A stretch of 64,000 nt of DNA from Thalia democratica (GCA_965202585.1 OZ241829.1:18290001-18354000), one strand, 5' to 3'. Numbered from the stretch's first letter, positions 24,001 to 57,613 are shown. The notes: generated by a model from the letters alone, not told the origin. Numbers and translations: made by a program.

Positions 24001-25789
24001 AAGACTACGTAACCCTCTCAAAACAACAAATGTTAATCGACCGAAGCTCTACGTTTGAAATGAATGTGCTCTGTGAAATACCAACACCGGAATGTCATGA
24101 AAGTACTAATCTTGTTATTTACATAAAAGATTAAATTTCTACTTAGTATGTGTAGAGTTTTTTAACACTTGAGATGTTTGTATTAGTTTTTATTTCTGTA
24201 TGTGACACTATTGATAAAAAATAGATGTGAGGTGTCCAGCAATACCTAATGCATCTTATAATATCGAAGAGAGATATTTAGGAGATCAGCTTGTACGGGG
24301 CGTCAAAATAACTTACGAATGTAATCAAGGATTTATACGTATTTCTGGAAGCAACTCTATTACATGCACTGTAGATGGGTGGTCAGAAAACGCAGAATGC
24401 GTTAAAAGTAAGCAAAAAACAACAAACAAAAAAAGTTTGAACCAAAACTATTGCTTTTTTAGAGTTTTTTATAAAAGTTTTAAACGTTAAAATTTGTATA
24501 ATCTTTAGCCTATAGATAAACACAAGCATGTTTCAACAATGTGTTAAAACTATTGGATTTTAAACTACAGTTTTATTAAGTTTGTCCTCCCCTACCAACC
24601 CCGGACGATTTCAATGTGAAAATCGTAGAACTAGACTTTACTGACTACACCATGACTAGATACGCTTGCGATAATTCAAATTACCAGTTTTTGTACTTTA
24701 TTCATCTAAACATCACTAATTGATGAGTATATTTCAAGTTAAAAATCATTAATTAAATTAAGGTTTTTAGTTTCACCAACATAAAAAGCATAATTACGAA
24801 ATAAACCACATAAACATAACGACCAAATAAAAGCTTAATTTGTATAAATTAAAACCTTTGTTACTAAAATTGTACCTTGACCAAAATGCTTAATATGTTG
24901 GTTTCTTATTGAATTATTTTTGACTCACTAACAACTCACAGGGGAATACGAGTTCAGCTTAACGAGAAAAAAGGGTACGTTTAACCAGGCTCGGGAGCAA
25001 TGTCAAGAAATGAGTGGAGACCTAATATATGAAAACTTAGGACCCGACGGGAAAATGTATCACCCGTAAGTTGTATTTTAAATATATGTATATGTATGTC
25101 TATAAAACAAAACAGCATTTCGTTTGACAACTTGATAATGACTTGAATTTGTGTGAAAGTACTTTTTTACGATAAAAAATATTTCTTTTTTACCAACTTA
25201 AAAAATCTCGATTAATTCTGTGTGTTTCACTATTTAACTAACCTATCCTAAGAATATAACAGACAACTTAAGTTTTGGTTTAGTTAGCAAAATAACAACA
25301 ATTTTTTGAGTTACATCGGACATACACAACTTTGCATATAAAATTAAATCCAACTGACATGCTTAATTTTTTCTTCATCTCGTTTACCGCAAAAAATCAC
25401 AACGGATTCATTTGAACTTTATTACCGCGTAAATCTGAAAATAAAAAAACAGAGAAATCAGGGATTTGGTCGTGGATAATCCAGCGTGGATCGGCCTGAC
25501 CGACGAAGTTGTTGAGGGTGAGTGGCGGAAACCGGGATCTTCAGCTTCAGATGAGGTGTTTGACACTAGAATGAATGGAAACTTGTTCTCGTGGGTAATG
25601 CCTGAGCCCAATAACGGCCGTGTTAATAGGATCACCGCAGTTTACCAGGACTGTGTGTATGTCGGTTACAAAGGCCCACTGAATATGGACGACACCAACT
25701 GCTGCACCGATGTTCCGGTTGGAACATGCACATCTTTTTACTCGGGCGACAAGTTTGGTCTTTGCGAGATAAAACCGCCCGAAGGTTGA
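1..25789 (+). CDS. 3' part of a multi-exon gene for a modular CCP(sushi)/ILEI-like/C-type lectin protein (5' end outside window)
   Basis: Exons 1-16, 1740-1937, 2361-2552, 4218-4402, 4676-4844, 5485-5610, 6014-6196, 6323-6517, 7447-7644, 10556-10756, 10922-11110, 12266-12463, 12888-13079, 16589-16783, 19611-19805, 20576-20779, 22184-22307, 23783-24102, 24225-24407, 24942-25065, 25453-25789. All internal junctions are AG/GT, phases are compatible, and the sum is 3924 nt in one open frame. The exon joining is inferred, with no transcript data. Confidence 0.8.
1740..1937 (+). CDS. CCP exon A
   Basis: tgtag|AT TGT...AAA A|gtcggt, phase 1-1; DCGPSP..YTC..TYNCVNGGDW..FEC has 4 Cys plus Trp. Confidence 0.85.
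2361..2552 (+). CDS. CCP exon B
   Basis: ccag|TG TGC...CCA A|gtcagt; CPYPP..GTRAVYSC..LEGSDTITCQDSGNW..PPGC is a canonical sushi domain. Confidence 0.9.
2835..3243. mobile_element. MITE-like element with ~55-bp TIRs made of ~12-bp subrepeats; second copy ~13363-14583 hosts the 824-bp element
   Basis: gacaattcgaattcggacaactcaaattccgtcaattcaaattcttaaaaaaa pairs with ttttttaagaatttgaattgtcggaatttgaattgtccaaatttgaatagac. No TSD established. Confidence 0.7.
4218..4402 (+). CDS. ILEI/FAM3(GG)-like domain, exon C (absent from ORF track)
   Basis: ttgcag|AG ACT; TFHVYALSAG..NGIIKWQG..RGTGVAIINPLTDTVQYNRFDT matches the S-x-G / RG-x-x-V / FDT pattern of ILEI/PANDER domains (recognised by eye). Phase 1-0, donor gtgggt. 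Confidence 0.7.
4676..4844 (+). CDS. ILEI-like domain, exon D
   Basis: atcag|CTT GAA CGC ATG; LERMAAFIENNSTYGDVIVMAVRG..IMAKIG. Phase 0-1, compatible with exons C and E. Confidence 0.7.
5485..5610 (+). CDS. ILEI-like domain, exon E
   Basis: acag|AC ACA CAC CAC TCT TGG; HSWVVVTGR resembles the ILEI SW-x-x-x-G motif; donor G|gtgaga. Exons C+D+E total 480 nt, phase 1-1. Confidence 0.7.
6014..6196 (+). CDS. CCP exon F
   Basis: ttcag|CT TGC; CQNPPP..YFDGELLNFTC..VVCTTMGW..GC. Confidence 0.88.
6323..6517 (+). CDS. CCP exon G (absent from ORF track on + strand)
   Basis: acag|AA TGC; CADPPEG..ATYRCINGLVAVPG..FTCNEDRSW..APTC; donor G|gttgct. Confidence 0.85.
7447..7644 (+). CDS. CCP exon H
   Basis: tacag|AT TGT...AGT G|gtaagt; same subfamily as exons A and I. 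Confidence 0.88.
8280..9700 (-). mobile_element. Decayed non-LTR retrotransposon ORF2 (CR1/L2-like RT), probably extending to ~8090 and ~10100
   Basis: Minus-strand motifs in canonical order: PDNIP, ISLTS, QFGFVPNRS (~9352-9381), VYANIKQAFDSV, WFSNILIGRSQSV, SGVSQGGVIGPLLF (~9086-9118), FSDDANIF, YIRPNLEY, LEYRR, with stops and frameshifts. Confidence 0.85.
10556..10756 (+). CDS. CCP exon I
   Basis: tttag|AT TGT...AAA A|gtaagt. Confidence 0.88.
10922..11110 (+). CDS. CCP exon J
   Basis: cttag|AA TGC...TCA G|gtttct; CNEVP..SGSELEYSC..MTCGKNGEW..FEC. Confidence 0.88.
12266..12463 (+). CDS. CCP exon A2 (duplicate of A, not in ORF track)
   Basis: Near-identical to 1740-1937, 198 nt, open frame. 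Confidence 0.85.
12888..13079 (+). CDS. CCP exon B2 (duplicate of B)
   Basis: Near-identical to 2361-2552, 192 nt, open frame. Confidence 0.88.
13469..14292. mobile_element. 824-bp non-autonomous Tc1/mariner-superfamily-type DNA element
   Basis: 25-bp TIRs CAGTACACTACCGCTTAAGTACGCA / TGCGTACTTTAGCGGTAGTATACTG (2 mismatches), TA TSD (13467-68 and 14293-94), subterminal TGCGTAC repeats. The empty site is visible at ~2939-2940. Confidence 0.9.
16520..18732 (+). repeat. Segment duplicated at ~57756-58974 (exon K plus flanking intron)
   Basis: Colinear match; the second copy lacks ~960 bp between two ~70-bp direct repeats. Confidence 0.9.
16589..16783 (+). CDS. CCP exon K
   Basis: cacag|AG TGC...AAA G|gtaacg; CSSIPP..HGTQVDFKCQSGY..CGGTTPGVVD..C; lacks the usual Trp. 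Confidence 0.85.
19611..19805 (+). CDS. CCP exon L
   Basis: tacag|AT TGT...AAA G|gtgata; CPEVP..ATFVC..LTCSKNATW..KC. Confidence 0.85.
20576..20779 (+). CDS. CCP exon M
   Basis: tgcag|AC TGC...AAC A|gttagt; CPD..VEYVCKSGY..YKCQEDGMW..LQC. Confidence 0.85.
22184..22307 (+). CDS. CTLD-1 first-half exon N (not in ORF track)
   Basis: ttcag|AT TGC...CAT AA|gtaagt; CFQF..NFGDAKSHCEENSGRL. Phase 1-2. Confidence 0.85.
23345..23390 (+). ncRNA. Minimal type I hammerhead ribozyme motif (Penelope-like-element type)
   Basis: CUGAUGA (23353-59), stem II GUCC-UAAUAA-GGAC, GAAA (23374-77), palindromic stem III C-CG-G, then GUC with predicted cleavage after 23383. Stem I is only ~3 bp (UGA/UCA). Confidence 0.8.
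23783..24102 (+). CDS. CTLD-1 second-half exon O
   Basis: tacag|T GTG; CWTGISD..EQVFKF..WTFGEPN..VLCEI; donor A|gtacta. Phase 2-1. Confidence 0.82.
24225..24407 (+). CDS. CCP exon P
   Basis: atag|AT GTG...AAA A|gtaagc; CPAIPNA..GVKITYECNQGF..ITCTVDGW..EC. Confidence 0.9.
24581..24723 (+). pseudogene. Half-CCP exon Q0 (truncated, or an alternative terminal exon)
   Basis: taag|TT TGT; CPPLPTP..TRYACDNSNYQ contains only 2 Cys and then runs into TGA. No phase-1 donor before the stop. Confidence 0.55.
24942..25065 (+). CDS. CTLD-2 first-half exon R0 (only intact copy)
   Basis: cacag|GG GAA...CAC CC|gtaagt; YEFSL..GTFNQAREQCQEMSGDL. Phase 1-2. Confidence 0.87.
25453..25789 (+). CDS. CTLD-2 second-half terminal exon, class S, copy 1
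   Basis: acag|A GAA (phase 2); WIGLTD..EGEW..EPNN..DCVYV..MDD..C..GLCEI; TGA stop; AATAAA at 25897-25902. Confidence 0.85.
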
Positions 25790-25896
25790 AAAGAAATTTG
25801 AGCTGTGCGAAGCAGAGCGCAGCGCTTGAAGGTGTTGGAGTTTTGTATTTATTTTATGAGCTTCCGTTTTTAAATTATTTTGTTTTTGCTCCTTTT

Positions 25897-25902
25897 AATA
25901 AA
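25897..25902 (+). terminator. Polyadenylation signal after the S exon; equivalent at 26934-26939 after S2 and in later copies
   Basis: AATAAA about 105 nt after the stop, in a U-rich context. Confidence 0.55.
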
Positions 25903-26547
25903 ACTTTGTACTTTTTTCATTTAGATTTTATGGCTCTGTATTTTTTTCTTAGTTTTTAAAGTTTAGTTTAAACCTAGTTAGATATATATCATTAAAATGC
26001 TGTAGTAAAACATATTTTCATATTTAAATTACCTAATAAGTCATCGTAACACTGTAGAATATTTTAGTATAGACTAGAATATTTTATAAGGTTATTTATT
26101 GCATTTGTTTAAAATCTAAAAGTAAAAGCTATATGCATGTTTGTCTGCTGTACAGTGAAAAGCTGTAAGTTTTATTTTAAATATATTTGTCTTTAAAACA
26201 TAACAGCATTATGTTATACAATTTGATTATGACATGAGTTAGTGTAAAAATGCTTGTTAACAGTAAAAATATTTCTTTTATTACCAGCTTAAAAATCTCG
26301 ATCAATTATGTGTGTTTCACTAGTAAACTAACACATCCTAGGAATATAATAAACAACTTAAGTTTTGGTTTAGTTAGCAAAATAACGACATCAAAAAAAT
26401 TTGAGTAACATCGGACGTACACAACTTTGCATATGAAAATAAATCCAACTGACATGCTTGATTTTTTCTTCATCTCTTTCACCGAAAAAATCACAGCGGA
26501 TTCATTTTAACTGTATTACAGCGTAAATCTCAAAGTAAAATAAACAG

Positions 26548-26830
26548 AGAAATCAGAAAATTGGTCCTGGATAAGGAAGCGTGGATCGGCCTGACCGACG
26601 AATTAGTTGAGGGCGTGTGGCGGAAACCGGAATCAGATGTGATGTTTGACACTGAAATGGCTGGAAACTTGTTCTCGTGGTCATCAGGTGAGCCAAACGA
26701 CGGCGGTGAACACACCATCCAAAACTGCGTGTATGTCCGTTTGAAGTTTGGACGGCTGGGTATGGACGACAATCATTGCTCGATTCCTTTAAAGTTGGGT
26801 CTCTGCGAGATAAAACCGCCCGAAGAGTAA
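26548..26830 (+). CDS. Alternative CTLD second-half terminal exon, class S2, copy 1
   Basis: acag|A GAA (phase 2); WIGLTD..GEPND..NCVYV..MDDNHC..GLCEI; TAA stop; AATAAA at 26934-26939. Confidence 0.7.
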
Positions 26831-28370
26831 AAAATTGAGCTGTGCTTAGCAGAGCACAGCGCTTGTTGATGTTGCTGTTTTGTATTTATTTTATGAGTTT
26901 GTGTTTTTAGATTATTTTGTTTTTGTTCCTTTTAATAAAACTTTGTACATTTTTTTTCATTTAGATTTTATAGCCCTGTATTTTTTTAGTTTTTAAAGTT
27001 TTGTTTAAATCTTGTTAGATATATATCATTAAAATGCTAGTGTAAAACATTTTTTCTTCTTTAAATTACCTAATAAGTCATCATAGTACTGTGTAATATT
27101 TTAGTTTAGTCTAAATGTTTTGTAAGGTTTTTTTGTTGCATTTGTTTGAAATCTCAAATTAAGAGCTATATGCATGTTCGTCTGCTGTACAGTAAAAACA
27201 AGATTTTATTTCACTTTCTCGTTTGAGATATTTTAGTTGTTTTATCCCGTAAGATACACTTGTGCACAAAACAGTTTTACTGTGCTTAAATTATTTATTT
27301 CTTATTTAAAATTAGCTACTACTAAACATTTAAAAGTTCCTCAATGATGCACTCCTTTATTGTATTTATACTCCTAAAGCAAACTTAAATACAAGGCTTT
27401 GGACATATTTTTAATTGAAACAACCTAAATATATAAAGTTTATTTAGAGAATAATAATAAAGTACTTTTTTTATATTTTAAGTGGTAGAAGCTATTTGGC
27501 TTTAAAAATATTTCAGTAGTACTTGATTGTTTTTTAAAACAATTTCTATTTTTATTAAAACATTAAACGGTCTGCGGTAGACTACGTTTACTTCTAGCCT
27601 ACAGTATATAATACCAAACTTTTGTTTAATGCTTGTAATAAATTTTATTGTTTTGATATATCTCTTTAAGCTTAAATTGTGCTTCATAAGAATAGAGGTA
27701 GTTGTACATTTCAAGGTTACCTAAACAAAGTATGTTTGGCACCGCATAATGATAGCAACTATATTTTTATTTCAAACAAGTAAAGTAGGGTAAAACTATT
27801 TTATATTTATTTGTAAACTAATCACTTAATTTTTTTTTAGTTGTAAAAATAAGTATTCAAACCACTTTTTTTAAATGTACTAAATTAACGATCTAAACGA
27901 CATAAACTAAATTTGCACAATCTTGTTGGCGAGTAATAATAAATTTATTGTTAATCTCAATAAGCCATCTGATATTTTCTGGTGGTCTTTTTAAACAGCA
28001 CAAGTTTGTTGCAGGGGTAGAAAGCTTTTTTATTTAACCGGCTTTCATTATTTAAAACATATATTAAAAAGGTTATACTGAAACTATGACTAAATTTAAT
28101 GATAAAGTAAATTATATCAAAATAACATAATCATATACAAATGAAAATTAGTTTTAGTTGCAAACTATTGTGTTTAAGAGTAAATTTACATGTAAAAACA
28201 ATATGCTGCTTTGAGACAAGCAATACTAGTATGAGACAAGTAAATTTTTAAAAATTACCTTTTAAAAATAACCAGTAGTTATTACGGCCATCATCAACAG
28301 AGTTGAGATGTTTCGCGCCATCAGTAATAATTAATGAGCTTTACCGCAAGATCAACAGCATCCGAGACAA

Positions 28371-28413
28371 TCCTACGACCGGTTTCGTCCTAATTAGGGC
28401 TAATCAGGCAGGA
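28371..28413 (-). ncRNA. Degenerate type I hammerhead motif; copies at 36512-36554, 44647-44689 and 51723-51765
   Basis: Minus strand reads UCCUGC-CUGAUUA-GCCC-UAAUUA-GGAC-GAAA-CCGG-UC-GUAGGA: 6-bp stem I, but G8->U and one stem II mismatch. Confidence 0.65.
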
Positions 28414-28584
28414 ATACTCGCGAGACACCGCTATTGTGAACTTAACCAAGCGGGCTTAAGTACAAAGTACTGATCATCAAACATAGCTAAAGTTATAAAA
28501 ACTCAATAAAAAGTTTAAACTTATTTACTTAATATAAAAGGTGAAAACGTAGTACAAATTACTAATATTAAAATAATATTCTAT

Positions 28585-28800
28585 TAGGGGGAGACGTAGG
28601 GAAATAAAACTAATTAGTATCATAAATAGAAATATGATGAAATCAGTAGTTAGTTTAGATGAGATAATTAATATAAAGGAATTATTTACTTATTTTCTTT
28701 TTACTATCTTTGTGGAAAGTTACTGAGTTTTAATCTATTTGAATTAAATCTGCTCAGTTTTAAGCGAATATCTTCTACCCTCTCACACAATACGACATTT
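28585..28800 (-). mobile_element. 3' fragment of the same LINE family, present in each 8.1-kb unit
   Basis: Diverged match to 8085-8300 (tagggg..cgtagggaaataaaa; cagtagtt..tttagatgagata; accct..cacac.atac). Confidence 0.55.
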
Positions 28801-29848
28801 AATTTTTTTTCTTGGTAAGATTGATTAAAACAAAAGAGTGATTTAATTACCATAACATACTATCTTGAAACTTTTTTTTTTGTCATTGAAAAACAAAAAC
28901 TTTTTCAATTAAATTCATCGATTATTTATTTTTCAGACTAATGAAAAAATATATGCTTAGTTGATCTCTTTTATTGAGTCAATACTCATTGCAAATGCCG
29001 ATAAATACAAACAATAATTGCAATAAAATTGCAATATATAAGTAGACAAAAAAAAACAGTTAGTAAACTACACCACAGTCATAAAATTCGACGTTTTATT
29101 CAAAGCTTTTGAAATAAAAGTTTCACCTACACCTGAGGTTTAGAAAATGTTTAACCTAGTCTGAGTTTTTAAAATTTTAAAACTAGCCTGTTTGTTTGGC
29201 ATCTGTGTTTAAAATAAAATTCACAAAATAAAGAAATGTCGAAGTTTGTTAAGAGTGAATTTGTTATATAGCTAAAAAAATATTTATAAGTCAGCTTTAA
29301 TGAAATACTAAGTTTTATAAATATTTTTAATAAATGTATAAAATTTATTAAGCCATTTATGAAGTAGAAAAACTTATTTTCTATTGAGCATTGTAGCAAT
29401 TTTTTATCTGCAATAAAAATACATATTGCATTTAAAAACAGTAAATGTGATACACAAGACGAGCTATAGGAATAAAAAACTTTAGTTGGGATTTATTGCG
29501 AGAAACGAAAAAAAAATTGCTTAAATCAGTTTTAACATAGTTATCATTAGTAACTACAGACTCATCAGAAAAAACTGTTAAGGAAAGTTATAAAGTAGCA
29601 AAAGTAATTAAAAAAAAACATACCGTTTAGAACTGAAAACTTATTTTAAAAAGTTGTGATGAACGTTGTAAAACATTTTTACTATCTAGTATTAACTAGA
29701 ATAGTTGTTTACTAACTAGAATTTAACCTAGTTAAGCTTAATTAAGCATTTATTTATAGGATAGATTATATTAAACCTTTTGTAGAAGCTGTTAATCGTA
29801 ACGCACACTCACTAACACGATTAGTAGCACTAATCATTCTATTTGAGG

Positions 29849-31123
29849 ATGAGTGCTAGCAGCAAGAGATCCATACCTGTGTCAGTATACGACCGCTCGA
29901 GGTTAGTTACTGATGCTGAAGAGGGTATGGACGCTAGTTACCACATACCAACTATAAACCCTGAGCGGACTAACATATCTCACCAACACAAAGCGATATC
30001 AGAACAACACAAATCGATATCAGACGAAATGAAAGTGTTAGTAGCAAGAGCTGAGGGTTATAATGGCATCCTTCAACGCTACGATCCACTACCTTTCGAT
30101 AACATTAACGAATACACAACGAAAACGAAGACCATTAATAAACAAAAAATGCGCCAAAACTATGTCGCACCGAACAGTTTTGAAAATTTAACGGCGTACA
30201 GTCATCAAACGTCGTTAAAAAATGTTAATGAAATGATTAGAACATTAGAACAAAAAAAAACTCTTCTTCCAATTTACGTCAACGACGGCAGTGTTTTTAA
30301 TAAAGAAACTGGCGCAGATAAGCTTACACGTAAATTTCACCGTTTCACTAAAATTACTACACCACGCCAAACCCTGAATTACTTCGTCGGAGAATTTGAG
30401 CGACTCAATGTGACAGATGATCACACGAAATATAACATTATAGTCGGAAAATGGGTTCCCGACGAGGTGTCACAATACTATACGACAGTCAGCCCTGAAA
30501 AACAAAATTTTCAATCGTTCAAAGAATTTTTTGAAAGACGTGACTGTCCCTTTACGCCAATTCTCGGCAAACGTCCAATACTTACCAGCTCTACTTCGTT
30601 TAGCGCGTATTTGGCCGAGGCTACCGAATGTGCAACAGCTCATGAGGATGACCGTATTAAGTTCTTTTTATAATATCATGCTCCTAGTTCTTTGAAGAGC
30701 AGGATCGAAAAATATGTTGTAGAAGATCTTATACAATTTAAACGCCGCGTACAGACTATGCGGTCACACCAAAGTGACGACCCTCCTGTATCCGATCCAC
30801 CAGTCAATTATAACAAGTCAAGAAAAAACCAAGGCCATCAACGACATAATGGGCGTCACAATAGCGGCAATGACAGGTATGTTAAACAAAGTTATGACAA
30901 TAGCGGTAACTTGAGACAGAACTTTTAAAAGCGTTACCAAAATTACGGTAGTAGTAATAATTACGGGCGTAACTTTAACAATCGAAATCAAAATTGCATT
31001 AATTTTTCTAGATACTTCGTTCGAAATTTTAATATCCGAAACCAAAATTGTTGTAACGGTGGTAGTTATAGGCACGAACTTGATAATCGTTACCAAAACC
31101 ATGGTAACAGTAATAACTATTAG
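29849..31123 (+). mobile_element. Decayed Ty3/Gypsy gag-like reading frame; copies at ~37990-39266, ~46123-47399 and ~53201-54838
   Basis: One frame of ~425 codons with internal TAA at 30671-73 and 30926-28. YFVGEFERLNVTDDHTKYNIIVGKWVPDEV..FQSFKEFF resembles the Gypsy Gag capsid N-terminal region (DUF7041-like, by eye). Asn/Arg/Tyr-rich tail; no pol. Confidence 0.55.
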
Positions 31124-32059
31124 CGCCACCGAAAAAAAATTACGTTAGTAGACCTTATAATAAAAAGTTATTAATAAAATTAAAGCTCTTACTAATTCAC
31201 TTAACTTGAGGTTTAAATTAAACTTTATATCTAAATTGATAAACTTTATGATGTATTTTATCGAAAAAAATGTGCTTAATGCAATTTGAATGAATATCAT
31301 TTTTAATTTAATTTATATTTTGTGATGCTTTATTGTTGTCTTTTTCTTAAGTGTTAAGGAGGTGTTGCAGATTGATATAAATAATAAAAGTGGTATAAAT
31401 AAAGATGCTAACTTTTCAGAAAAAATGAATTTTGAATCAAACATATAATAAAATATGTTTTATCGTTGAGCTTCTCGTATTTCGTTTAAGTTGAGGTTAA
31501 AATTGAACTTTTTATTTATCATGATTAGTTTATTTTTATCAAAAAAATGTACTTAATACAATTTAGATGAATCCCCTTTGTAATTTGATTTAAATTTCAA
31601 GTATATTTTGTGAAACTTGATTATGGAGCATCTTGTAATTCCTATAAGTTGAGGTTTAAATTAAATTTTATATTTATAATGATTAGTTTATTTTCTAAAT
31701 TTTGTTATTCTTTTTTATTATTTTTCTATCATTAGTTGTTCTTAAAATAAAGTTTAAAATTTAAATTCTATAGATTGAATAGAACGACTTTTTGAGAAGT
31801 ATGATACTATTTGTTTGCTTTCATAAAACTTACTCATTAAAAAAAAATAAATAAAGTCGATATTGAACATCGACCTGAAAAATTTATTGTTTTCGCTTCG
31901 ATAGTCAAAATGTCGAGTTAGTTAATAAATAATTTAAATTTTTAATTTTTTTCGTTTAATGATAATTAAATTAAAAACAATTTGGTTTTTTAAAACATTG
32001 TTTCGAACAAATAATAACAATCGCTAGTTAAGCTAGTTGACGCATTTTCGTTAATGCCA

Positions 32060-32638
32060 TGTAGAGTAAACTAACAATCACGCCGGGTATCATGCTTCTA
32101 CCAGCATGTTATAACTAGATAATTAGAACCATGCCTTGATCATGCGGAACTGTTATGCAAACGAGGTGTACATAAGCAGCCGAGCGAATGAGAGAGCAAG
32201 TTTTACCGACTTCATGTCAAGAAGAAAGCAGTTCCACGTCTCTTGGCGCTTTGAGCGTAAGCCGCCATCTTAGAAAAGCTAGATGATCTCCGGAAAATCC
32301 TTCTTATTCAAGTATTTGTTTGTTAATCTAAAACATTTACTTTGTACTTTACTTCATAACTTCGTAGTTTTTATATCTTATTCTATATACATTTTGTATA
32401 CCTACTTTAGCAATGTCGACGGGGCGTACAGCTCGTTTTGAGTTGTTAGCATGCCATACTCATAAGTTTACGCATACTGTAGCAGACAAGCTGTCCTCCA
32501 GCAACAACTTTCAGTTTTGGTCAATTTGAACATAGAACTCAACGTATAAGCCTACACATTCGGTGGCATAAACTTATTACTTCTGTCTTTCTTTTCTTTA
32601 TTTCAATATTTGTGTCTTTTTATTTTGCGCGCTCTACA
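32060..32638 (-). mobile_element. LTR-like segment (579 bp); copies at 40195-40773, 48327-48918 and 55768-56348
   Basis: Ends TGTAGAG...CTCTACA (TG..CA with a 7-bp inverted terminus). On the minus strand it is followed directly by TGG (PBS-like) and has a TATAAAA box. No TSD and no partner LTR within the unit. Confidence 0.6.
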
Positions 32639-33092
32639 TCCGGTGTCACCCGGTTAAATTTGTATAATCTACAGCCTATAGATATACACAAGCATGTTTC
32701 AAAACTATGTTAAAACTATTGGATTTTATTTAGTTTGCCTCTCCTACCAACCCCGGAAGATTTCAATGTGAAAATGGTAGAACTAGACTTTACTGACTAC
32801 ACCATGACTAGATACGCTTGCGATAATTCAAATTACCAGTTTTTGTACTTTATTCATCTAAACATCACTAAGTGATGAGTATATTTCAAGTTAAAAATCA
32901 TTAATTAAATTAAGGTTTTTAGTTTCACCAACATAAAAAGCATAACTACGAAAAAAACCACATAAATAAAACGACCAAATAAAAGCTTAAGTTGTATAAA
33001 TTAAAATCTTCTTTACTAAAGTTTACCTTGACCAAAATGCTTAATATGTTGGTTTCTTATTGAATTATTTTTGACTCACTAACAACTCACAG

Positions 33093-33216
33093 GGGAATAC
33101 GAGTTCAGCTTAACGAAAAAAAAGGGTACGTTTAACCAGGCTCGGGAGCAATGTCAAAGATTGAATGGAGACCTAATATATTAAAACTTGGGACCCGGCA
33201 GGAAAATGTATCACCC
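33093..33216 (+). pseudogene. R exon copy 1, nonsense
   Basis: GAA->TAA at 33182-33184. Confidence 0.85.
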
Positions 33217-33606
33217 GTAAGTTGTATTTTAAATATATGTATATGTATGTCTATAAAACAAAACAGCATTTCGTTTGACAACTTGATAATGACTTGAATT
33301 TGTGTGAAAATACTTTTTTACCGTAAAAAATATTTCTTTTTTTCCAACTTAAAAAATCTCGATTAATTCTGTGTGTTTCACTATTTAACTAACCTATCCT
33401 AAGAATATAACAGACAACTTAAGTTTTGGTTTAGTTAGCAAACTAACAACAACAAAAATTTGAGTACCATCGGACGTACACAACTTTGCATATAAAATTA
33501 AATCCAACTAACATGCTTGATTTTTTCTTCATCTCTTTTACCGCATAAAGTCACAACGGATTCATTTGAACTTTATTACCGCGTAAATCTGAAAATAAAA
33601 AAACAG

Positions 33607-46100: not shown

Positions 46101-49100
46101 GCACTAATCATTCTATTTGAGGATGAGTGCTAGCAGCAAGAGATCCATACCTGTGTCAGTATACGACCGCTCGAGGTTAGTTACTGATGCTGAAGAGGGT
46201 ATGGACGCTAGTTACCACATACCAACTATAAACCCTGAGCGGACTAACATATCTCACCAACACAAAGCGATATCAGAACAACACAAATCGATATCAGACG
46301 AAATGAAAGTGTTAGTAGCAAGAGCTGAGGGTTATAATGGCATCCTTCAACGCTACGATCCACTACCTTTCGATAACATTAACGAATACACAACGAAAAC
46401 GAAGACCATTAATAAACAAAAAATGCGCCAAAACTATGTCGCACCGAACAGTTTTGAACATTTAACGGCGTACAGTCATCAAACGTCGTTAAAAAATGTT
46501 AATGAAATAATTAGAACATTAGAACGATAAAAAAAACTCTTCTTCCAATTTACGTCAACGACGGCAGTGTTTTTAATAAAGAAACTAGCGCAGATAAGCT
46601 TACACGTAAATTTCACCGTTTCACTAAAATTACTAGACCACGCCAAACCCTGAATTACTTCGTCGGAGAATTTGAGCGACTCAATGTGACAGATGATCAC
46701 ACGAAATATAACATTATAGTCGGGAAATGGGTTCCCGACGAGGTGTCACAATACTATACGATAGTCAGTCCTAAAAACCGAAATTTTCAATCGTTCAAAG
46801 AATTTTTTGAAAGACTTGACTGTCCCTTTACGCCAATTCTCGGCAAACGTCCAACACATACGAGCTCTACTTCGTTTAGCGCGTATTTGGCCGAGGCTAC
46901 CGAATGTGCAACAGCTCATGAGGATGACCGTATTAAGTTCTTTTTATAATATCATGCTCCTAGTTCTTTGAAGAGCAGGATCGAAAAATATGTTGTAGAA
47001 GATCTTATACAATTGAAACGCCGCGTACAGACTATGCGGTCACACCAAAGTGACGACCCTCCTGTATCCGATCCACCAGTCAATTATAACAAGTCAAGAA
47101 AAAACCAAGGCCATCAACGACATAATGGGCGTCACAATAGCGGCAATGACAGGTATGTTAAACAAAGTTATGACAATAGCGGTAACTTGAGACAGAACTT
47201 TTAAAAGCGTTACCAAAATTACGGTAGTAGTAATAATTACGGGCGTAACTTTAACAATCGAAATCAAAATTGCATTAATTTTTCTAGATACTTCGTTCGA
47301 AATTTTAATATCCGAAACCAAAATTGTTGTAACGGTGGTAGTTATAGGCACGAACTTGATAATCGTTACCAAAACCATGGTAACAGTAATAACTATTAGC
47401 GTCACCGAAAAAAAATTACGTTAATAGACCTTATAATAAAAAGTTCAGAATAAAATTAAAGCTCTTACTAATTCACTTAACTTGAGGTTTAAATTAAACT
47501 TTATATCTAAATTGATGGACTTTATGATGTATTTTATCGAAAATGTGCTTAATGCAATTTGAATGAATATCGTTTTTAATTTAATTTATATTTTGTGATG
47601 CTTTATTGTTGTCTTTTTCTTAAGTATTAAGGAGGTGTTGCAGATTGACATAAATCATAAAAGTAGTATAAATAAGGAAGCTAATTTTTCAGAAAAAATT
47701 AGTTTTGAATCAAACATATAATAAAATATGTTTTATCGTTGAGCTTCTCGTAATTCGTTTAAGTTGAGGTTAAAATTGAACTTTTTATTTATCATGATTA
47801 GTTTATTTTTATCAAAAAAATGTACTTAATACAATTTAGATGAATCCCCTTTGTAATTTGATTTAAATTTCAAGTATATTTTGTGAAACTTGATTATGGA
47901 GCATCTTGTAATTCCTATAAGTTGAGGTTTAAATTAAATTTTATATTTATAATGATTAGTTTATTTTCTAAATTTTGTTATTCTTTTTTATTATTTTTCT
48001 ATCATTAGTTGTTCTTAAAATAAAGTTTTAAATTTAAACTCTACAGATTGAACAAAACGACTTTTTGAGAAGTATGATACTATTTGTTTGCTTTCATAAA
48101 GCTTACTCATTAGAAAAAAAAAGTCGATATTTGACATCGACCTGAAAAATTTATTGTTTTCGCTTCGATAGTCAAAATGTCGAGTTCGTTAATAAATAAT
48201 TTAATTTTTAAATTGTTTTCGTCTAATAATAGTTCAAATAAAAACAATTTGTTTTTTTAAAACATTGTTTCGAACAAATAATAAAAATCGCTAGTTAAGT
48301 TAGTTGACGCATTTTCCTTAATGCCATGTAGAGTAAACTACCAATCACGCCGGGTATCATTTATATCTATCAGCATATTATAATTAGATAATTAGAACCA
48401 TGCCTTGATCATCCTTGATCATCCGAAACTTTTATGCAAACGAGGTGTTCATAAGCAGCCGAGCGAATGAGAGAGCAAGTTTTACCGACTTCATGTCAAG
48501 AAGAAAGCAGTTCCACGTCTCTTGGCGCTTTGAGCGTAAGCCGCCATCTTAAAAAAGCTAGATGATCTCCGGAAAATCCTTCTTATTCAAGTATTTGTTT
48601 GTTTATCTAAAACATTTACTTTGTACTTTACTTCATATCTTCGTAGTTTTTATATTTTATTCTATATACATTTTGTATACCTACTTTAGCAATGTCGAGG
48701 GGGCGTACAGCTCGATTTGAGTTGTTAGCGTGCCATATTCATAAGTTTACACATACTGTAGCAGACAAGCTGTCCTCCAGCAACAACTTCCAGTTTTGGT
48801 CAATTTAAACATAGAACTCAACGAAAGAAGCCTACACATTTGGTGGCATAAAATTATTACTTCTATCTTTCTTTTCTTTATTTCAATATTTTTATCTTTT
48901 TATTTTGCGCGCTCTACATCCGGTGTCATCCGGTTAAATTTGTATAATCTACAGCCTATAGATAAACACAAGCATGTTTCAACACTGTGTTAAAACTATT
49001 GGATTTTGAACAACAGTTTTATTTAGTTTGTCCTCTCCTACCAACCTCGGACGATTTCAATGTGAAAATCGTAGAACTAGACTTTACTGCCTACACCATG

Positions 49101-49387
49101 ACTAGATACGCATGCGATGATTCAAATTACCAGTTTTTGTACTTTATTCATCTAAACATCACTAATTGATGAGTATATTTCAAGTTGAAGATCATTAATT
49201 AAATTAAGGTTTTTAGTTTCACCAACATAAAAAGCATAATTACGAAATAAACCACATAAACATAACGACCAAATAAAAGCTTAATTTGTATAAATTAAAA
49301 CCTTTGTTACTAAAATTGTACCTTGACCAAAATGCTTAATATGTTGGTTTCTTATTGAATTATTTTTGACTCACTAACAACTCACAG

Positions 49388-49510
49388 GGGAATACGAGTT
49401 CAGCTTAACGAAAAAAAGGGTATGTTTAACCAGGCTCGGGAGCAATGTCAAGAAATGAGTGGAGACCTAATATATGAAAACTTAGGACCCGACGGGAAAA
49501 TGTATCACCC
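49388..49510 (+). pseudogene. R exon copy 3, 1-nt frameshift
   Basis: 123 nt versus 124; the A-run is one base short, giving a TGA. Confidence 0.8.
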
Positions 49511-49896
49511 GTAAGTTGTATTTTAAATATATGTATATGAATGTCTATAAAACAAAACAGCATTTCGTTTGACAACTTGATAATGACTTGAATTTGTGTG
49601 AAAGTACTTTTTACGATAAAAAATATTTCTTTTTTACCAACTTAAAAAACCTCGATTAATTCTGTGTGTTTCACTATTTAACTAACCTATCCTAAGAATA
49701 TAACAGACAACTTAAGTTTTGGTTTAGTTAGCAAAATAACAACAATTTTTTGAGTTACATCGGACATACACAACTTTGCATATAAAATTAAATCCAACTG
49801 ACATGCTTAATTTTTTCTTCATCTCGTTTACCGCAAAAAATCACAACGGATTCATTTGAACTTTATTACCGCGTAAATCTGAAAATAAAAAAACAG

Positions 49897-50179
49897 AAAA
49901 ATCAGAAAATTGGTCCTGGATAAGGAAGCGTGGATCGGCCTGACCGACGAATTAGTTGAGGGCGTGTGGCGGAAACCGGAATCAGATGAGATGTTTGACA
50001 CTGAAATGGCTGGAAACTTGTTCTCGTGGTCATCAGGTGAGCCAAACGACGGCGGTGAACACACCATCCAAAACTGCGTGTATGTCCGTTTGAAGTTTGG
50101 ACGGCTGGGTATGGACGACAATCATTGCTCGATTCCTATAAAGTTGGGTCTCTGCGAGATAAAACCGCCCGAAGAGTAA
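49897..50179 (+). CDS. Class S2 CTLD exon, copy 4, behind a class-S intron (chimeric)
   Basis: The upstream intron matches the one before 25453; the exon body matches class S2; open frame. Confidence 0.55.
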
Positions 50180-53100
50180 AAAATTGAGCTGTGCGTAGCA
50201 GAGCACAGCGCTTGTTGGTGCTGCTGTTTTGTATTTATTTTATGAGTTCCTGTTTTTAGATTATTTTGTTTTTGTTCGTTTTAATAAAACTTTGTACTTT
50301 TTTTTCATTTAGATTTTATAGCTCTGTATTTTTTTAGTTTTTAAAGTTTTGTTTAAATCTTGTTAGATATATATCATTGTAATGCTACTGTAAAACATTT
50401 TTTCTTCTTTAAATTACCTAATATGTCATCGTAGTACTGTGTAATACTTTAGTTTAGTCTAAATGTTTTGTAAGGTTTTTTTGTTGCATTTGTTTGAAAT
50501 CTCAAATTAAGAGCTATATGCATGTTTGTCTGCTGTACAGTAAAAACAAGATTTTATTTCACTTTCTCGTTTGAGATATTTTAGTTGTTTTATCCCGTAA
50601 GATACACTTGTACACAAAACAGCTTTACTGTGCTTAAATTATTTATTTCTTATTTAAAATTAGCTAATACTAAACATTTAAAAGTTCCTCAATGATGCAC
50701 TTCTTTATTGTATTTATACTCCTAAAGCAAACTTAAATACAAGGCTTTGGACATATTTTTAATTGAAACAACCTAAATATATAAAGTTTATTTAGAGAAT
50801 AATAATAAAGTACTTTTTTTTATATTTTAAGTGGTAGAAGCTATTTGGCTTTAAAAATATTTCAGTAGTACTTGATTTTTTTTTTGAAACAATTTCTATT
50901 TTTATTAAAACAGTAAACGGTCTGCGGTAGACTACGTTTACTTCAAGCCTACAGTATATAATACCAACCTTTTGTTTAATACTTGTAATAAATTTTATTG
51001 TTTTGATATATCTCTTTAAGCTTAAATTGTGCTTCATAAGAATAGAAGTAGTTGTACATTTCAAGGTTACCTAAACAAAGTATGTTTGGCACCGCATAAT
51101 GATAGCAACTATTTATTTTTATTTCAAACAAGTAAAATAGGGTAAAACTATTTTATATTCATTTGTAAACTAGTCACTTAATTTTTTTTTAGTTGTAAAA
51201 ATAAGTATTCAAACCACTTTTTTTAAATGTACTAAATTAACGATTTAAACGACATAAACTAAATTTGCACAATCTTGTTGGCGAGTAATAATAAATTTAT
51301 TGTTAATCTCAATAAGCCATCTGATATTTTCTGGTGGTCTTTTTAAACAGCACAAGTTTGTTGCAGGGGTAGAAAGCTTTTTTATTTAACCGGCTTTAAT
51401 TATTTAAAACATATATTAAAAAGGCTATAGTGAAACTATGACTAAATTTAATGATAAAGTAAATTATATCAAAATAACATAATCATATACAAATGAAAAT
51501 TAGTTTTAGTTGCAAACTATTGTGTTTAAGAGTAAATTTACATGTAAAAACAATATGCTGCTTTGAGACAAGCAATACTAGTATGAGACAAGTAAATTTT
51601 TAAAAATTACCTTTTAAAAATAACCATTAGTTATTACGGCCATCATCAACAGAGTTGAGATGTTTCGCGCCATCAATAATAATTAATGAGCTTTACCGCA
51701 AGATCAACAGCATCCGAGACAATCCTACGACCGGTTTCGTCCTAATTAGGGCTAATCAGGCAGGAATAGTCGCGAGAAACCGCTATTGTGATGTTAACCA
51801 AGCGGGCTTAAGTACAAAGTACTGATCATCAAACATAGCTAAAGTTATAAAAACTCAATAAAAAGTTTAAACTTATTTGCTTAATATAAAAGGTGAAAAC
51901 GTAGTACAAATTACTAATATTAAAATAATATTCTATTAGGGGGAGACGTAGGGATATAAAACTAATTAGTATCAAAAATAGAAATATGATGAAATCAGTA
52001 GTTAGTTTAGATGAGATAATTAATATAAAGGAATTATTTACTTATTTTCTTTTTACTATCTTTGTGGAAAGTTACTGAGTTTTAATCTATTTGAATTAAA
52101 TCTGCTCAGTTTTAAGCGAATATCTTCTACCCTCTCACACAATACGACATTTAATTTATTTTCTTGGTAAGATTGATTAAAACAAAAGAGTGATTTAATT
52201 ACCATAACATACTATCTTGAAACTATTTTTTTTGTCATTGAAAAACAAAAACTTTTTCAATTAAATTCATCGATTATTTATTTTTCAGACTAATGAAAAA
52301 ATATATGCTTAGTTGATCTCTTTTATTGAGTCAATACTCATTGCAAATGCCGATAAATACAAACAATAATTGCAATAAAATTGCAATATGTAAGTAGACA
52401 AAAAAAAACAGTTAGTAAACTACACCACAGTCATAAAATTCGACGTTTTATTCAAAGCTTTTGAAATAAAAGTTTCACCTACACCTGAGGTTTAGAAAAT
52501 GTTTAACCTAGTCTGAGTTTTTAAAATTTTAAAACTAGCCTGTTTGTTTGGCATCTGTGTTTAAAATAAAATTCACAAAATAAAGAAATGTCGAAGTTTG
52601 TTAAGAGTGAATTTGTTATATAGCTAAAAAAATATTTATAAGTCAGCTTCATTAAAAAAACAACTTTTATAAATATTTTTAATAAATGTATAAAATTTAT
52701 TAAGCCATTTATGAAGTAGAAAAACTTATTTTCTATTGAGCATTGTAGCAATTTTTTATCTGCAATAAAAATACATATTGCATTTAAAAACAGTAAATGT
52801 GATACACAAGACGAGCTATAGGAGTAAAAAACTTTAGTTGGGATCTATTGCGAGAAAAGAAAAAAAAAATTGCTTAAATCATTTTTAACATAGTTATCAT
52901 TTGTAACTACAGACTGACTAGAAAAAACTGTTAAGGAAAGTTATAAAGTAGCAAAAGTAATTAAAAAAAATATACCGTTTAGAACTGAAAACTTATTTTA
53001 AAAATTTGTGATGGACGTTGTAAAACATTTTTACTATCTAGTATTAACTAGAATAGTTGTTTACTAACTAGAATCTAACCTAGTTAAGCTTAATTAAGCA

Positions 53101-56100
53101 TTTATTTATAGGCTAGATTATATTAGACCTTTTGTAGAAGCTGTTAATCGTAACGCACACTCACTAACACGATTAGTAGCACTAATCATTCTATTTGAGG
53201 ATGAGTGCTAGCAGCAAGAGATCCATACCTGTGTCAGTATACGACCGCTCGAGGTTAGTTACTGATGCTGAAGAGGGTATGGACGCTAGTTACCACAACT
53301 ATAAACCCTGAGCGGACTAAAAAAAAATATACCGTTTAGAACTGAAAACTTATTTTAAAAATTTGTGATGGACGTTGTAAAACGTTGTAAAACGTTTTTA
53401 CTATCTAGTATTAACTAGAATAGTTGTTTACTAACTAGAATCTAACCTAGTTAAGCTTAATTAAGCATTTATTTATACGCTAGATTATATTAGACCTTTT
53501 GTAGAAGCTGTTAATCGTAACGCACACTCACTAACACGATTAGTAGCACTAATCATTCTATTTGAGGATGAGTGCTAGCAGCAAGAGATCCATACCTGTG
53601 TCAGTATACGACCGCTCGAGGTTAGTTACTGATGCTGAAGAGGGTATGGACGCTAGTTACCACAACTATAAACCCTGAGCGGACTAACATATCTCACCAA
53701 CACAAAGCGATATCAGAACAACACAAATCGATATCAGACGAAAGGAAAGTGTTAGTAGCAAGAGCTGAGGGTTATAACGGCATCCTTCAACGCTACGATC
53801 CACTACCTTTCGATAACATTAACGGATACAAAACGAGAACGAAGACCGTTAATAAACAAAAAATGCGCCAAAACTATGTCGCACCGAACAGTTTTGAACA
53901 TTTATCGGCGTACAGTCATCAAACGTCGTTAAAAAATGTTAATGAAATAATTAGAACATTAGAACAAAAAAAAAACTCTTCTTCCAATTTACGTCAACGA
54001 CGGCAGTGTTTTTAATAAAGAAACTAGCGCAGATAAGCTTACACGTAAATTTCACCGTTTCACTAAAATTACTACACCACGCCAAACCCTGAATTACTTC
54101 GTCGGAGAATTTGAGCGACTCAATGTGACAGATGATCACACGAAATATAACATTATAGTCGGAAAATGGGTTCCCGACGAGGTGTCACAATACTATACGA
54201 CAGTCAGCCCTGAAAAACAAAATTTTCAATCGTTCAAAGAATTTTTTGAAAGACGTGACTGTCCCTTTACGCCAATTCTCGGCAAACGTCCAATACTTAC
54301 CAGCTCTACTTCGTTTAGCGCGTATTTGGCCGAGGCTACCGAATGTGCAACAGCTCATGAGGATGACCGTGTTAAGTTCTTTTTATAATATCATGCTCCT
54401 AGTTCTTTGAAGAGCAGGATCGAAAAATATGTTGTAGAAGATCTTATACAATTTAAACGCCGCGTACAGACTATGCGGTCACACCAAATTGACGACCCTC
54501 CTGTATCCGATCCACCAGTCAATTATAACAAGTCAAGAAAAAACCAAGGCCATCAACGACATAATGGGCGTCACAATAGCGGCAATGACAGGTATGTTAA
54601 ACAAAGTTATGACAATAGCGGTAACTTGAGACAGAACTTTTAAAAGCGTTACCAAAATTACGGTAGTAGTAATAATTACGGGCGTAACTTTAACAATCGA
54701 AATCAAAATTGCATTAATTTTTCTAGATACTTCGTTCGAAATTTTAATATCCGAAACCAAAATTGTTGTAACGGTGGTAGTTATAGGCACGAACTTGATA
54801 ATCGTTACCAAAACCATGGTAACAGTAATAACTATTAGCGTCACCGAAAAAAAATTACGTTAGTAGACCTTATAATAAAAAGTTCAGAATAAAATTAAAG
54901 CTCTTACTAATTCACTTAACTTGAGGTTTAAATTAAACTTTATATCTAAATTGATGGACTTTATGATGTATTTTATCGAAAATGTGCTTAATGCAATTTG
55001 AATGAATATCGTTTTTAATTTAATTTATATTTTGTGATGCTTTATTGTTGTCTTTTTCTTAAGTGTTAAGGAGGTGTTGCAGATTGACATAAATCATAAA
55101 AGTAGTATAAATAAGGAAGCTAATTTTTCAAAAAAAATTAGTTTTGAATCAAACATATAATAAAATATGTTTGATCGTTGAGCTTCTCGTAATTCGTTTA
55201 AGTTGAGGTTTAAATTGAACTTTTTATTTATCATTATTAGTTTATTTTTATCAAAAAAATGTACTTAATACGATTTAGATGAATCCCCTTTGTAATTTGA
55301 TTTAAATTTCAAGTATATTTTGTGATACTTGATTATGGAGCATCTCGTAATTCGTTTAAGTTGAGGTTTAAATTAAACTTTTATAATGATTATTTATTTT
55401 CTGAGTTTTTTACTCTTCTTTTTTATTCTTCTATCATTAATTGTTCTTAAAATAAAGTTTAAAATTTAAATTCTATAGATTGAATAGAACGACTTTTTGA
55501 GAAGTATGATACTATTTGTTTGCTTTCATAAAACTTACTCATTAGAAAAAAAAAATAAATAAAGTCGATATTGGACATCGACCTGAAAAATTTATTGTTT
55601 TCGCTTCGATAGTCAAAATGTCGAGTTAGTTAATAAATAAATTAAATTTTAAGTTTTTTTCGTTTAATGATAATTAAATTAAAAACAATTTGGTTTTTTA
55701 AAACATTGTTTCGAACAAATAATAACAATCGCTAGTTAAGTTAGTTGACGTATTTTCCTTAATGCCATGTAGAGTAAACTAACAATCACGCCGGGTATCA
55801 TGCTTCTACCAGCATGTTATAATTAGATAATTAGAACCATGCCTTGATCATGTGGAACTGTTATGCAAACGAGGTGTACAAAAGCAGCCGAGCGAATGAG
55901 AGAGCAAGTTTTACCGACTTCATGTCAAGAAAAAAGCAGTTCCACGTCTCTTGGCGCTTTGAGCGTAAGCCGCCATCTTAGAAAAGCTAGATGATCTCCG
56001 GAAAATCCTTCTTATTCAAGTATTTGTTTTTTTTTCTAAAACATTTACTTTGTACTTTACTTCATAACTTCGTAGTTTTTATTTCTTATTCTATATACAC

Positions 56101-56817
56101 TTTGTATACCTACTTTAGCAATGTCGACGGGGCGAACAGCTCGATTTGAGTTGTTAGCGTGCCATACTCAGAAGTTTACACATACTGTAGCAGACAAGCT
56201 GTCCTCCAGCAACAACTTCCAGTTTTGGTCAATTTGAACATAGAACTCAACGTATAAACCTACACATTCGGTGGCATAAACTTACTACTTCTATCTTTCT
56301 TTTTTTTTTATTTCAATATTTGTATCTTTTTATTTTTCGCGCTCTACATCCGGTGTCATCCGGTTAAATTTGTATAATCTACAGCCTATAGATAAACACA
56401 AGCATGTTTCAACACTGTGTTAAAACTATTGGATTTTGAACTACAGTTTTATTTAGTTTGTCCTCTCCTACCAACCTCGGACGATTTCAATGTGAAAATC
56501 GTAGAACTAGACTTTACTGACTACACCATGACTAGATACGCTTGCGATGATTCAAATTACCAGTTTTTGTACTTTATTCATCTAAACATCACTAATTGAT
56601 GAGTATATTTCAAGTTAAAAATCATTAATTAAATTATGGTTTTTAGTTTCACCAACATAAAAAGCATAACTACGAAATAAACCACATAAATATAACGACC
56701 AAATAAAAGCTTAAGTTGTATAAATAAAAACCTTCATTACTAAAATTGTACCTTGACCAAAATGCTTAATATGTTGGTTTCTTATTGAATTATTTTTGAC
56801 TCACTAACAACTCATAG

Positions 56818-56919
56818 GGGAATACGAGTTCAGCTTAACGAAACTCGGGAGCAATGTCAAAGATTGAATGGAGACCTAATATATGAAAACTTAGGACCCG
56901 ACGGGAAAATATATCACCC
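56818..56919 (+). pseudogene. R exon copy 4, 22-nt deletion
   Basis: 102 nt versus 124; acgaaa is joined directly to ctcggg, causing a frameshift to TGA. Confidence 0.85.
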
Positions 56920-57311
56920 GTAAATTGTATTTTATATATATATGTCTATTCAAAAAAAGCATTTCGTTTAACAACTTGATCATGACTTGAATTAGTGTGA
57001 AAATACTTGTTAACGGTAAAAAATATTTCTTTTTTTTACCAGCTTAAAAAATCTCGATCAATTATGTGTTTTTCACTGTTTAACTAACACATCCTAAGAA
57101 TATAATAAACAACTTAAGCTTTGGTTTAGTTAGCAAACTAACAACAACAACAAAAAAAAATTTGAGTAACATCGGACGTACACAACTTTGCATATAAAAT
57201 TAAATTCAACTAACATGCTTGATTTTTTCTTCATCTCTTTTACTAAAAAAAATCACAGCGGATTCATTTTAATTGTATTACAGCGTAAATCTCAAAGTTA
57301 AAAATAAACAG

Positions 57312-57613
57312 AGAAATCAGGGATTTGGTCCTGGATAATTCAGCGTGGATCGGCCTGACCGATGAACTAGTTGAGGGCGTGTGGCGGAAACCGGGATCTT
57401 CAGCTACAGATGAGGTGTTCGACACTAGAATGAATGGAAACTTGTTTTCGTGGGCCGCAGATGAGCCAAATAACGGTGTAAATAACAACACGCACTGTGC
57501 ATATGTCAGTTTTATGGCCCTACTGATTATGGACGACCAACGATGCTCGTTAGAAATTAAATGTGGCCAAAAGTGTGGTCTTTGCGAGATAAAACTGCGA
57601 GATAAAATTTCAG
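57312..57613 (+). CDS. Divergent CTLD second-half exon, class T
   Basis: acag|A GAA; WIGLTD..DEPNN..HCAYV..MDDQRC..GLCEI. Possible phase-1 donor G|gtttta at 57614; otherwise the frame stops at 57636. No S-type 3' UTR follows. Confidence 0.55.

Follow-up and report, generated by a model that had tools for sequence, protein, structure and literature searches.

The Drosophila genes lola and mod(mdg4) splice their constant 5' exons to one of many alternative 3' terminal exons. In both genes the variable exons supply complete zinc-finger or FLYWCH modules, and the use of the 3' exons has been demonstrated by transcripts. Other clusters of alternative exons are built otherwise: the cassettes of Dscam1 are internal, with constant exons on both sides, and those of the protocadherins and of UGT1A are 5' exons with their own promoters. 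The chicken pseudo-V genes and the lamprey VLR cassettes are arrays of gene-conversion donors that act somatically. The locus described here lies in a 64,000-nucleotide stretch of DNA from Thalia democratica (GCA_965202585.1 OZ241829.1:18290001-18354000; hereafter the window, with positions counted from its first letter). It forms the 3' end of a gene in which a stalk of Sushi/CCP modules leads to a last CTLD (C-type lectin-like domain). This domain is divided between an exon named R0, encoding its N-terminal third, and a terminal exon, here called a cassette, which encodes about two thirds of it and is present in eight copies. A preliminary description regarded the locus as a candidate lectin-diversification cassette in which one constant R0 serves eight alternative sugar-binding halves. 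A hypervariable hot spot at the sugar site is indeed present; the dedicated one-plus-eight design did not hold, since tandem duplication explains the layout.

The region 24486-57600 is a head-to-tail array of about five copies of the 3' end of the gene, in units of ~8.15 kb, as seen by self-alignment, and it represents a segmental amplification of this gene end. Self-megablast of the window gives an offset of 8167 with 97.1% identity across 17.4 kb. The units are 94-97% identical (97% between neighbours) and the similarity along them is mosaic: in a four-unit alignment they differ by 3-5%, and units 2 and 3, near-identical over their first ~3.5 kb, are up to 9% diverged in their second halves. 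Units 1 to 4 are delimited by self-megablast and by the four-unit alignment:

24486-32652, plus strand: unit 1
32653-40787, plus strand: unit 2
40788-48932, plus strand: unit 3
48933-56362, plus strand: unit 4
56363-57600, plus strand: unit 5, older and truncated; it is homologous to the other units as far as the 3' end of the coding sequence of cassette T

From its proximal to its distal end, a unit comprises a 456-bp intron, R0, a 387-bp intron, a cassette termed S with its untranslated region (UTR), a 1.09-kb sub-duplication, and a ~5.4-kb spacer with gag-like open reading frames (ORFs). The sub-duplication (25066-26161 copied to 26165-27207) carries the intron, a second cassette termed S2 and the UTR, without R0. 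Unit 4 has lost 1.09 kb and retains a single S/S2 recombinant cassette. The left breakpoint of the sub-duplication lies at most 3 nt from the R0 donor (25066 / 26165), and the duplicated segment is exactly the intron, the terminal exon and ~370 nt of UTR; this position could be a coincidence or a trace of the duplication mechanism.

R0 takes one base from the previous exon and holds two bases of a codon at its end, in agreement with the phase 2 first assigned to it. Searches of the window by blastn and tblastn locate five copies, starting at 24942, 33093, 41228, 49388 and 56818 (a slash marks the exon boundary):

24942-25065, plus strand: R0, N-terminal third of the last CTLD, intact; peptide EYEFSLTRKKGTFNQAREQC...MYH, acceptor cacag/GG, donor CC/gtaagt
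33093-33216, plus strand: pseudo-R0 of unit 2; GAA>TAA nonsense change, splice sites intact
41228-41351, plus strand: pseudo-R0 of unit 3; identical to the unit 2 copy, with the same GAA>TAA change
49388-49510, plus strand: pseudo-R0 of unit 4; 1-bp deletion in an A run, the frameshift leading to an early stop
56818-56919, plus strand: pseudo-R0 of unit 5; 22-bp deletion (frameshift), acceptor catag, weakened donor gtaaat

The notion of one constant R0 is therefore correct for the intact exon, and has to be amended by four disabled copies. The splice sites are identical in units 1-4. Intact R0 is found in unit 1 only, where it is also the sole R0 preceded by the CCP stalk, the reading phase being kept from the last CCP exon (24226-24410) into R0 (24942-25065). 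This CCP exon is single-copy within the window (tblastn). Since the other R0 copies are disabled and the CCP exon is unduplicated, only unit 1 can provide a complete protein end by the ordinary route. The possibility that each unit is an independent small gene was discarded on the same two observations. Spacers and exons show equal similarity among the units, which, together with the disabled copies of an upstream exon, is the pattern of a tandem gene-end duplication with pseudo-exons.

Exactly eight cassette exons are detected in the window by tblastn:

25453-25789, plus strand: S of unit 1, the proximal terminal exon; 111 codons and a stop, AATAAA at 25897
26548-26830, plus strand: S2 of unit 1; 93 codons and a stop, AATAAA at 26934
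33607-33943, plus strand: S of unit 2, open
34693-34975, plus strand: S2 of unit 2, open
41742-42078, plus strand: S of unit 3, open
42828-43110, plus strand: S2 of unit 3, open
49897-50179, plus strand: sole cassette of unit 4, with an S-type intron and acceptor and an S2-type body
57312-57636, plus strand: T, framework intact; it ends in KLRDKISGFNKHNI-stop instead of the usual KLPED-stop tail

All eight start after an ...acag acceptor, with the same phase and near-identical acceptor sequences, and their open frame is the one in which the codon begun in R0 is completed. Seven of them stop directly after CEIK(P/L)PE(G/D/E), with AATAAA ~107 nt downstream. The preliminary description is borne out on these points: the coordinates, acceptors, phase, open frames and WIGL/EPN/MDD/CEI framework of the eight exons, the seven stops each followed by a 3' UTR, and the division into three classes, with an extra Cys pair present in S and T and absent in S2. 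The cassette at 49897 is as would be expected from unequal crossing-over between S and S2, with removal of 1.09 kb. Cassette T stands apart. The usual stop and UTR of the family have been lost at a rearrangement junction, and T reads nine codons further, to a secondary stop, its only one. Its GC content is 43%, as compared to 49-50% for S and S2, and it is closest to the single terminal exon of a related locus (contigs L005-L007, see below). T, which at present lies 32 kb from intact R0, is possibly the ancestral cassette. A role of T as an internal exon was also considered, as it is in frame with a CCP copy at 57823 via a weak donor (cag/gtttta), and was rejected: the presence of a stop two codons before the donor of that exon, and the end of homology at 58974, make this junction look like a relic.

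The assignment of the split domain to the C-type lectin fold is supported by several comparisons. Taken alone, the half-domains reach only 15-20 bits against the 22.6-bit cut-off of Pfam PF00059. When R0 is joined to S, S2 or T, sequences of 134-152 residues without a stop are obtained, and residues 4-143 of R0 plus cassette can be aligned, through the junction, with Limulus mannose-receptor-like CTLDs (E values of 1e-8 to 1e-10). A profile of 19 cassette peptides, from the window and from marine metagenomes, matches the Mincle carbohydrate-recognition domain (PDB ID 4kzv), its EPN lying opposite the EPN of Mincle and its MDD opposite WND (W>M, N>D). The W-I-G-L, E-P and Cys residues are invariant in 19/19 cassettes, while the third residue of EPN is N in 8/8 window cassettes and N, D or S in those of the metagenomes. 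The profile match and the presence of the WIGL, Cys and EPN/WND motifs place the domain among the C-type lectin-like domains. The variable part is the sugar-site half of the CTLD, as first proposed, and the 3' half of the cassette holds the loops around the predicted Ca2+ site 2.

Between EPN and the stop, this half constitutes a hypervariable module: the frame and the framework are kept, while the loops diverge several-fold faster than the neutral flanks. From class to class, the Jukes-Cantor (JC) distance is 0.21-0.28 for the whole exon versus 0.11-0.16 for intron and UTR. When the cassettes are split after the FSW motif, the 5' part diverges like the intron, and the part beyond (EPN to stop) exhibits synonymous distances (dS) of 0.6-0.8 and non-synonymous distances (dN) of 0.3-0.5. 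The divergence of the EPN-to-stop half is 2-4 times that of the introns, of the UTRs and of its own 5' half. CpG hypermutability was ruled out as the cause, as the excess remains at non-CpG sites (0.30 versus 0.12-0.14, Fisher 1e-4 to 1e-10), and the difference in GC content between exon and intron is roughly estimated to affect the rate by ~1.3-fold only. Exon indels between classes and taxa are all multiples of 3, as compared to 6/16 of the non-coding indels. Across the 19 cassettes, 24 framework columns are invariant, and the variability is concentrated in two segments, one after EPN and the other between MDD..C and GLCEI. Among the young units, an exon-specific excess of divergence is not seen, the exon windows falling within the range of the spacer windows. 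The level of dS in the cores suggests old cassette lineages residing within flanks that recombination may have homogenised. Positive selection possibly contributes to the divergence: the core of T compared with the related taxon has a dN/dS of 1.6, a value that alone is not significant.

Relatives of the locus were found in contigs from marine metagenomes, including Tara Oceans samples. Contigs L005 and L006, which share 98% identity, run collinearly with positions 23393-26177 of the window at 84% identity. They contain the C-half of the first CTLD, the CCP exon, an intact R0 and one T-like terminal exon with its UTR, followed by unrelated DNA. Compared with this related locus, JC distances are 0.07-0.13 for the introns, 0.08 for the UTR, 0.09 for the CCP exon, 0.13 for R0 and 0.26 for the terminal exon. 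S of unit 1 is 97% identical to the independent metagenome contigs L001 and L010, and S2 of unit 1 is 96% identical to contig L002, from another sample. Further cassette classes occur in the metagenomes (P0003, P0020, P0022, P0024, P0025), with the same framework throughout and, in nearly all, a KLPE(D/H)-stop tail.

Over ~360 nt of intron and 140 nt at the start of the exon, contig L008 matches unit 1 with 99% identity; beyond a point equivalent to ~25590, as far as the contig reaches, the identity drops to ~65%, and a different core is encoded, which matches none of the cassettes of the window. S-class peptide variants from other samples (P0001, P0015-P0017) mix residues typical of different window units. 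The sharp boundary in L008, the S/S2 recombinant of unit 4, the mosaic units and the mixed S-class variants together make it evident that whole cores are exchanged between otherwise near-identical alleles.

S2 deserves attention as no unit contains an R0 belonging to it. Its flanks are ~15% diverged from those of S, its framework is intact, and the exon indels between S and S2 are in frame in 4/4 cases (P~0.02). Such retention would be difficult to account for were S2 not expressed. Because S2 has remained open after an old duplication without an R0 of its own, and because R0 is the only phase-compatible donor, splicing of R0 to S2 is likely, S and S2 being then alternative last exons of R0. 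Such a choice is plausible for S versus S2 within unit 1, and read-through splicing to the distal cassettes is possible.

The reading that we prefer, with a probability of about 0.5, is that the locus is the amplified 3' end of a giant secreted Sushi/CCP-lectin gene, with hypervariable cores and spare distal cassettes. Cassette S (25453) would be the normal, default end of the gene and S2 (26548) an alternative last exon, while the distal cassettes would mainly be spare copies. Unequal crossing-over or gene conversion would move distal cassettes or cores behind the sole intact R0, providing individuals with differing lectin heads, and each cassette would meet selection in those haplotypes in which it has been relocated behind intact R0. 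Several observations weigh against this reading. The independent disabling lesions (3/3) all fall in R0 copies and none in the longer cassettes (P~0.014). The S-type exons (620 bp) have accumulated no indel or stop versus ~4.5 expected from spacer rates (P~0.012), an expectation that is overestimated, as the homopolymer-rich spacers inflate the indel rate applied to GC-rich exons. The amino-acid differences between proximal and distal cassettes lie, in 18/18 cases, outside 25 framework columns chosen without reference to the distal cassettes (P~0.007). Within classes, dN/dS is 0.4-0.85 (from few changes) and between classes 0.5-0.7, values that alone do not reject neutrality; the exons are no more conserved than the spacers among recent units; and the raised dS of the cores could derive in part from misalignment of the loops. 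The "related taxon" of L005/L006 might, alternatively, be a paralogous locus within this genome. Finally, HMMER searches of the full protein library and word-index searches with the S cassette returned short ORFs only, with no transcript-type match, and every contig fetched for these ORF matches is collinear genomic DNA with intron and UTR.

The lesion and framework tests give a hint that the distal cassettes are protected while pseudo-R0 decays, which would favour full splicing over spare copies. In its full form, this alternative holds that intact R0 is spliced over 33 kb to any of the eight cassettes, yielding up to eight heads of three classes. The phase compatibility of all acceptors, the seven cassettes with their own stop and AATAAA, and the fact that all eight cassettes are open although a single R0 is intact would be accounted for. 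We nevertheless consider it unlikely. Young tandem duplication explains the layout and no design is needed, and the distal copies are only 3-5% diverged, so that their intactness is weakly informative. The pseudo-R0 exons of units 2-4, with their perfect splice sites, would be spliced into a read-through transcript as competitors and disrupt its reading frame (phase-2 donor into phase-1 acceptor). Transcription would further have to pass two to eight poly(A) signals as well as the retroelement remnants of the spacers, and T lacks the normal stop and UTR. The signals of protection would fit either this eight-way splicing or relocation of cassettes within the population. A bolder combination, in which up to eight interchangeable half-lectin heads arise by last-exon choice while gene conversion continually reshuffles their cores, is more doubtful still. 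At the opposite extreme, only the junction of R0 to S (25453) would be made, S2 and the distal cassettes being unexpressed relics with inherited frames. The death of four of the five R0 copies, within-class dN/dS ratios compatible with 1, the equal conservation of exons and spacers, the truncation of T at a rearrangement junction with its lower GC, and the single terminal exon of the related locus (L005/L006) all agree with such debris. This explanation is tentative at best, as S2, devoid of R0 and with flanks diverged by ~15%, has yet kept its indels in frame and its framework intact, is found intact in four units and in an independent sample, and because lesions are deficient in the S-type exons relative to both R0 copies and spacers.

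An assembly or haplotype artefact, by which one or two real copies would have been expanded into an array, is very improbable. The near identity of units 2 and 3 over their first ~3.5 kb might suggest it; the units nevertheless show mosaic differences of 3-5%, the second halves of units 2 and 3 are up to 9% different, 1.09 kb is missing from unit 4, which has gained a 367-bp duplication, and unit 5 is older and truncated. Three different R0 lesions are unlike collapsed or expanded haplotypes, and S, S2 and other classes are present in independent metagenome assemblies. The least probable of the explanations is a somatic reservoir, in which distal cassettes would donate sequence to the expressed cassette by somatic gene conversion. 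The donors have no usable upstream exon, L008 displays a block-wise core replacement with a sharp boundary, and the conserved flanks of the cores could guide conversion. The mosaic allele, however, comes from bulk environmental DNA, for which germline polymorphism is a simpler explanation, its core is not among the cassettes of the window, and nothing was found that points to a somatic mechanism. An amplified gene end with spare distal cassettes consequently remains the preferred reading.

By analogy, the closest functional logic would be that of the lola and mod(mdg4) arrays of 3' exons, whose structural prerequisites are present: a constant upstream part, phase-compatible terminal exons with their own stop and poly(A) signal (T having the secondary stop only), and an end that would determine specificity. 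The cassettes differ from those exons in representing about two thirds of one domain. Furthermore, the young tandem array has also copied the "constant" exon, now broken four times, and the cassettes are interspersed with four competing pseudo-R0 exons. With Dscam1, the protocadherins and UGT1A the locus shares tandem alternative exons that vary part of a recognition domain, with a conserved framework and variable loops. Its cassettes are, however, 3'-terminal: every one ends in a stop, which is not the case of an internal cluster of the Dscam type, and neither of the two architectures applies. The pseudo-V and VLR arrays resemble it in their incomplete copies beside one complete gene and in block-wise mosaic alleles, whereas here only germline or population mosaicism is seen.

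Tandem, fast-evolving lectin families are documented in invertebrates, such as the expanded C-type lectins (CTLs) of bivalves (PMC10140915), the FREPs of Biomphalaria (PMC12074976) and the lectin repeats of prawns (PMC7536079). A report on chimeric CTL RNAs in prawns describes lectin exons joined at the RNA level (PMC12541431). These families have in common with the present locus the germline diversification of a recognition surface by duplication, recombination and conversion. They vary whole genes or repeats outside the fold, whereas here it is the C-terminal part of a CTLD, behind a giant CCP stalk, that varies. In full-text searches of the literature, no description of half-CTLD terminal cassettes was found, in tunicates or elsewhere; the nearest cases are whole-gene expansions and the prawn chimeras. 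Targets of diversity-generating retroelements (DGRs) use the C-type lectin fold with a variable C-terminal region (PMC4372165). The likeness to these bacterial targets lies in a CTLD with a variable C-terminal stretch and a framework that accommodates massive changes of its loops, and is an analogy in the use of the fold only: no reverse transcriptase or template-repeat logic and no adenine bias are seen here. Adenine mutagenesis of the DGR type was ruled out, as mismatches are distributed evenly among the four bases, and the only retroelement-like ORF of the spacer is a weak gag-like lead.

The locus combines known kinds of organization, namely tandem gene-end amplification, alternative last exons and fast-evolving lectins. 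If the cassettes are expressed, they would provide an invertebrate chordate with a compact way of giving one very long secreted receptor different sugar specificities, be it in the same animal or from one animal to another, which bears on the diversification of innate repertoires without somatic recombination. Were the eight heads real, recognition diversity of the lola or Dscam kind would be applied to the sugar loops of a lectin in the sister group of vertebrates. Should alternative splicing play no part, the locus still clearly exemplifies a hypervariable half-domain module with conserved flanks, which is exchanged as a block between alleles and of which several ancient lineages are detectable in ocean metagenomes.

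The DNA of the window is AT-rich and eukaryotic (GC 25-36%), and many Sushi/CCP exons are identified by Pfam on the plus strand between 1 and 24410. The features surrounding the cassettes are the following:

~22186-22308 and 23782-24097, plus strand: two exons encoding the gene's preceding CTLD (ORFs, sequence, tblastn)
24226-24410, plus strand: last Sushi/CCP exon of the stalk (Pfam Sushi, E=2.9e-7), with a phase-1 donor A/gtaagc
29834-31145, plus strand: gag-like retrotransposon ORFs in the spacer (weak Pfam DUF7041, E 0.02; Retrotrans_gag at 0.86 in the atlas), a lead only
57754-58974, plus strand: copy of the upstream segment 16519-18732, 93% and 85% identical, with a ~890-bp deletion

The C-half exon of the preceding CTLD (23782-24097 compared with L005:374-689) has a JC distance of 0.18, its own introns being at 0.10-0.12, and exhibits two 3-nt indels. 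Segmental duplications are found inside the CCP stalk (1-4225 versus 6502-7047 and 11091-15609, 89-96% identical), so that the Sushi exons have been multiplied too. Two ORF pieces located between Sushi exons (4175-4885, plus strand) have no match in Pfam. A hammerhead HH9-like match occurs on the plus strand at 23337-23403, in the intron of the first CTLD, with 29.4 bits versus a gathering score of 52 (E 1.5e-5); in the Rfam scan of the window, no family reaches its gathering score.

Within the array, the gag-like ORF of unit 1 is uninterrupted over 279 codons, and its counterparts in units 2-4 are split. The 367-bp tandem duplication of unit 4 (52963-53687, two copies, 97% identical) is confined to that unit. 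The intron preceding R0 harbours, in every unit, a half Sushi-like relic (CP.LPT.DDFNVKIVELDFT.YTMTRYACD..NYQF; 24545-24700 in unit 1, and for example 48966-49166). It is open in units 4 and 5; in units 1-3 a stop or frameshift interrupts it immediately ahead of the Cys-Pro. It has no obvious donor. Downstream of the array, the CCP exon contained in the 57754-58974 copy (~57823-58011) reads TAA, two codons ahead of its donor, at the position of a Tyr codon in segment 16519-18732, and the copy suggests that a larger and older tandem duplication once took place, most of its second copy being now gone. Two minisatellites lie towards the end of the window, at 61045-61385 (periods of 15/31 bp) and at 63456-63831 (periods of 18/34/52 bp).

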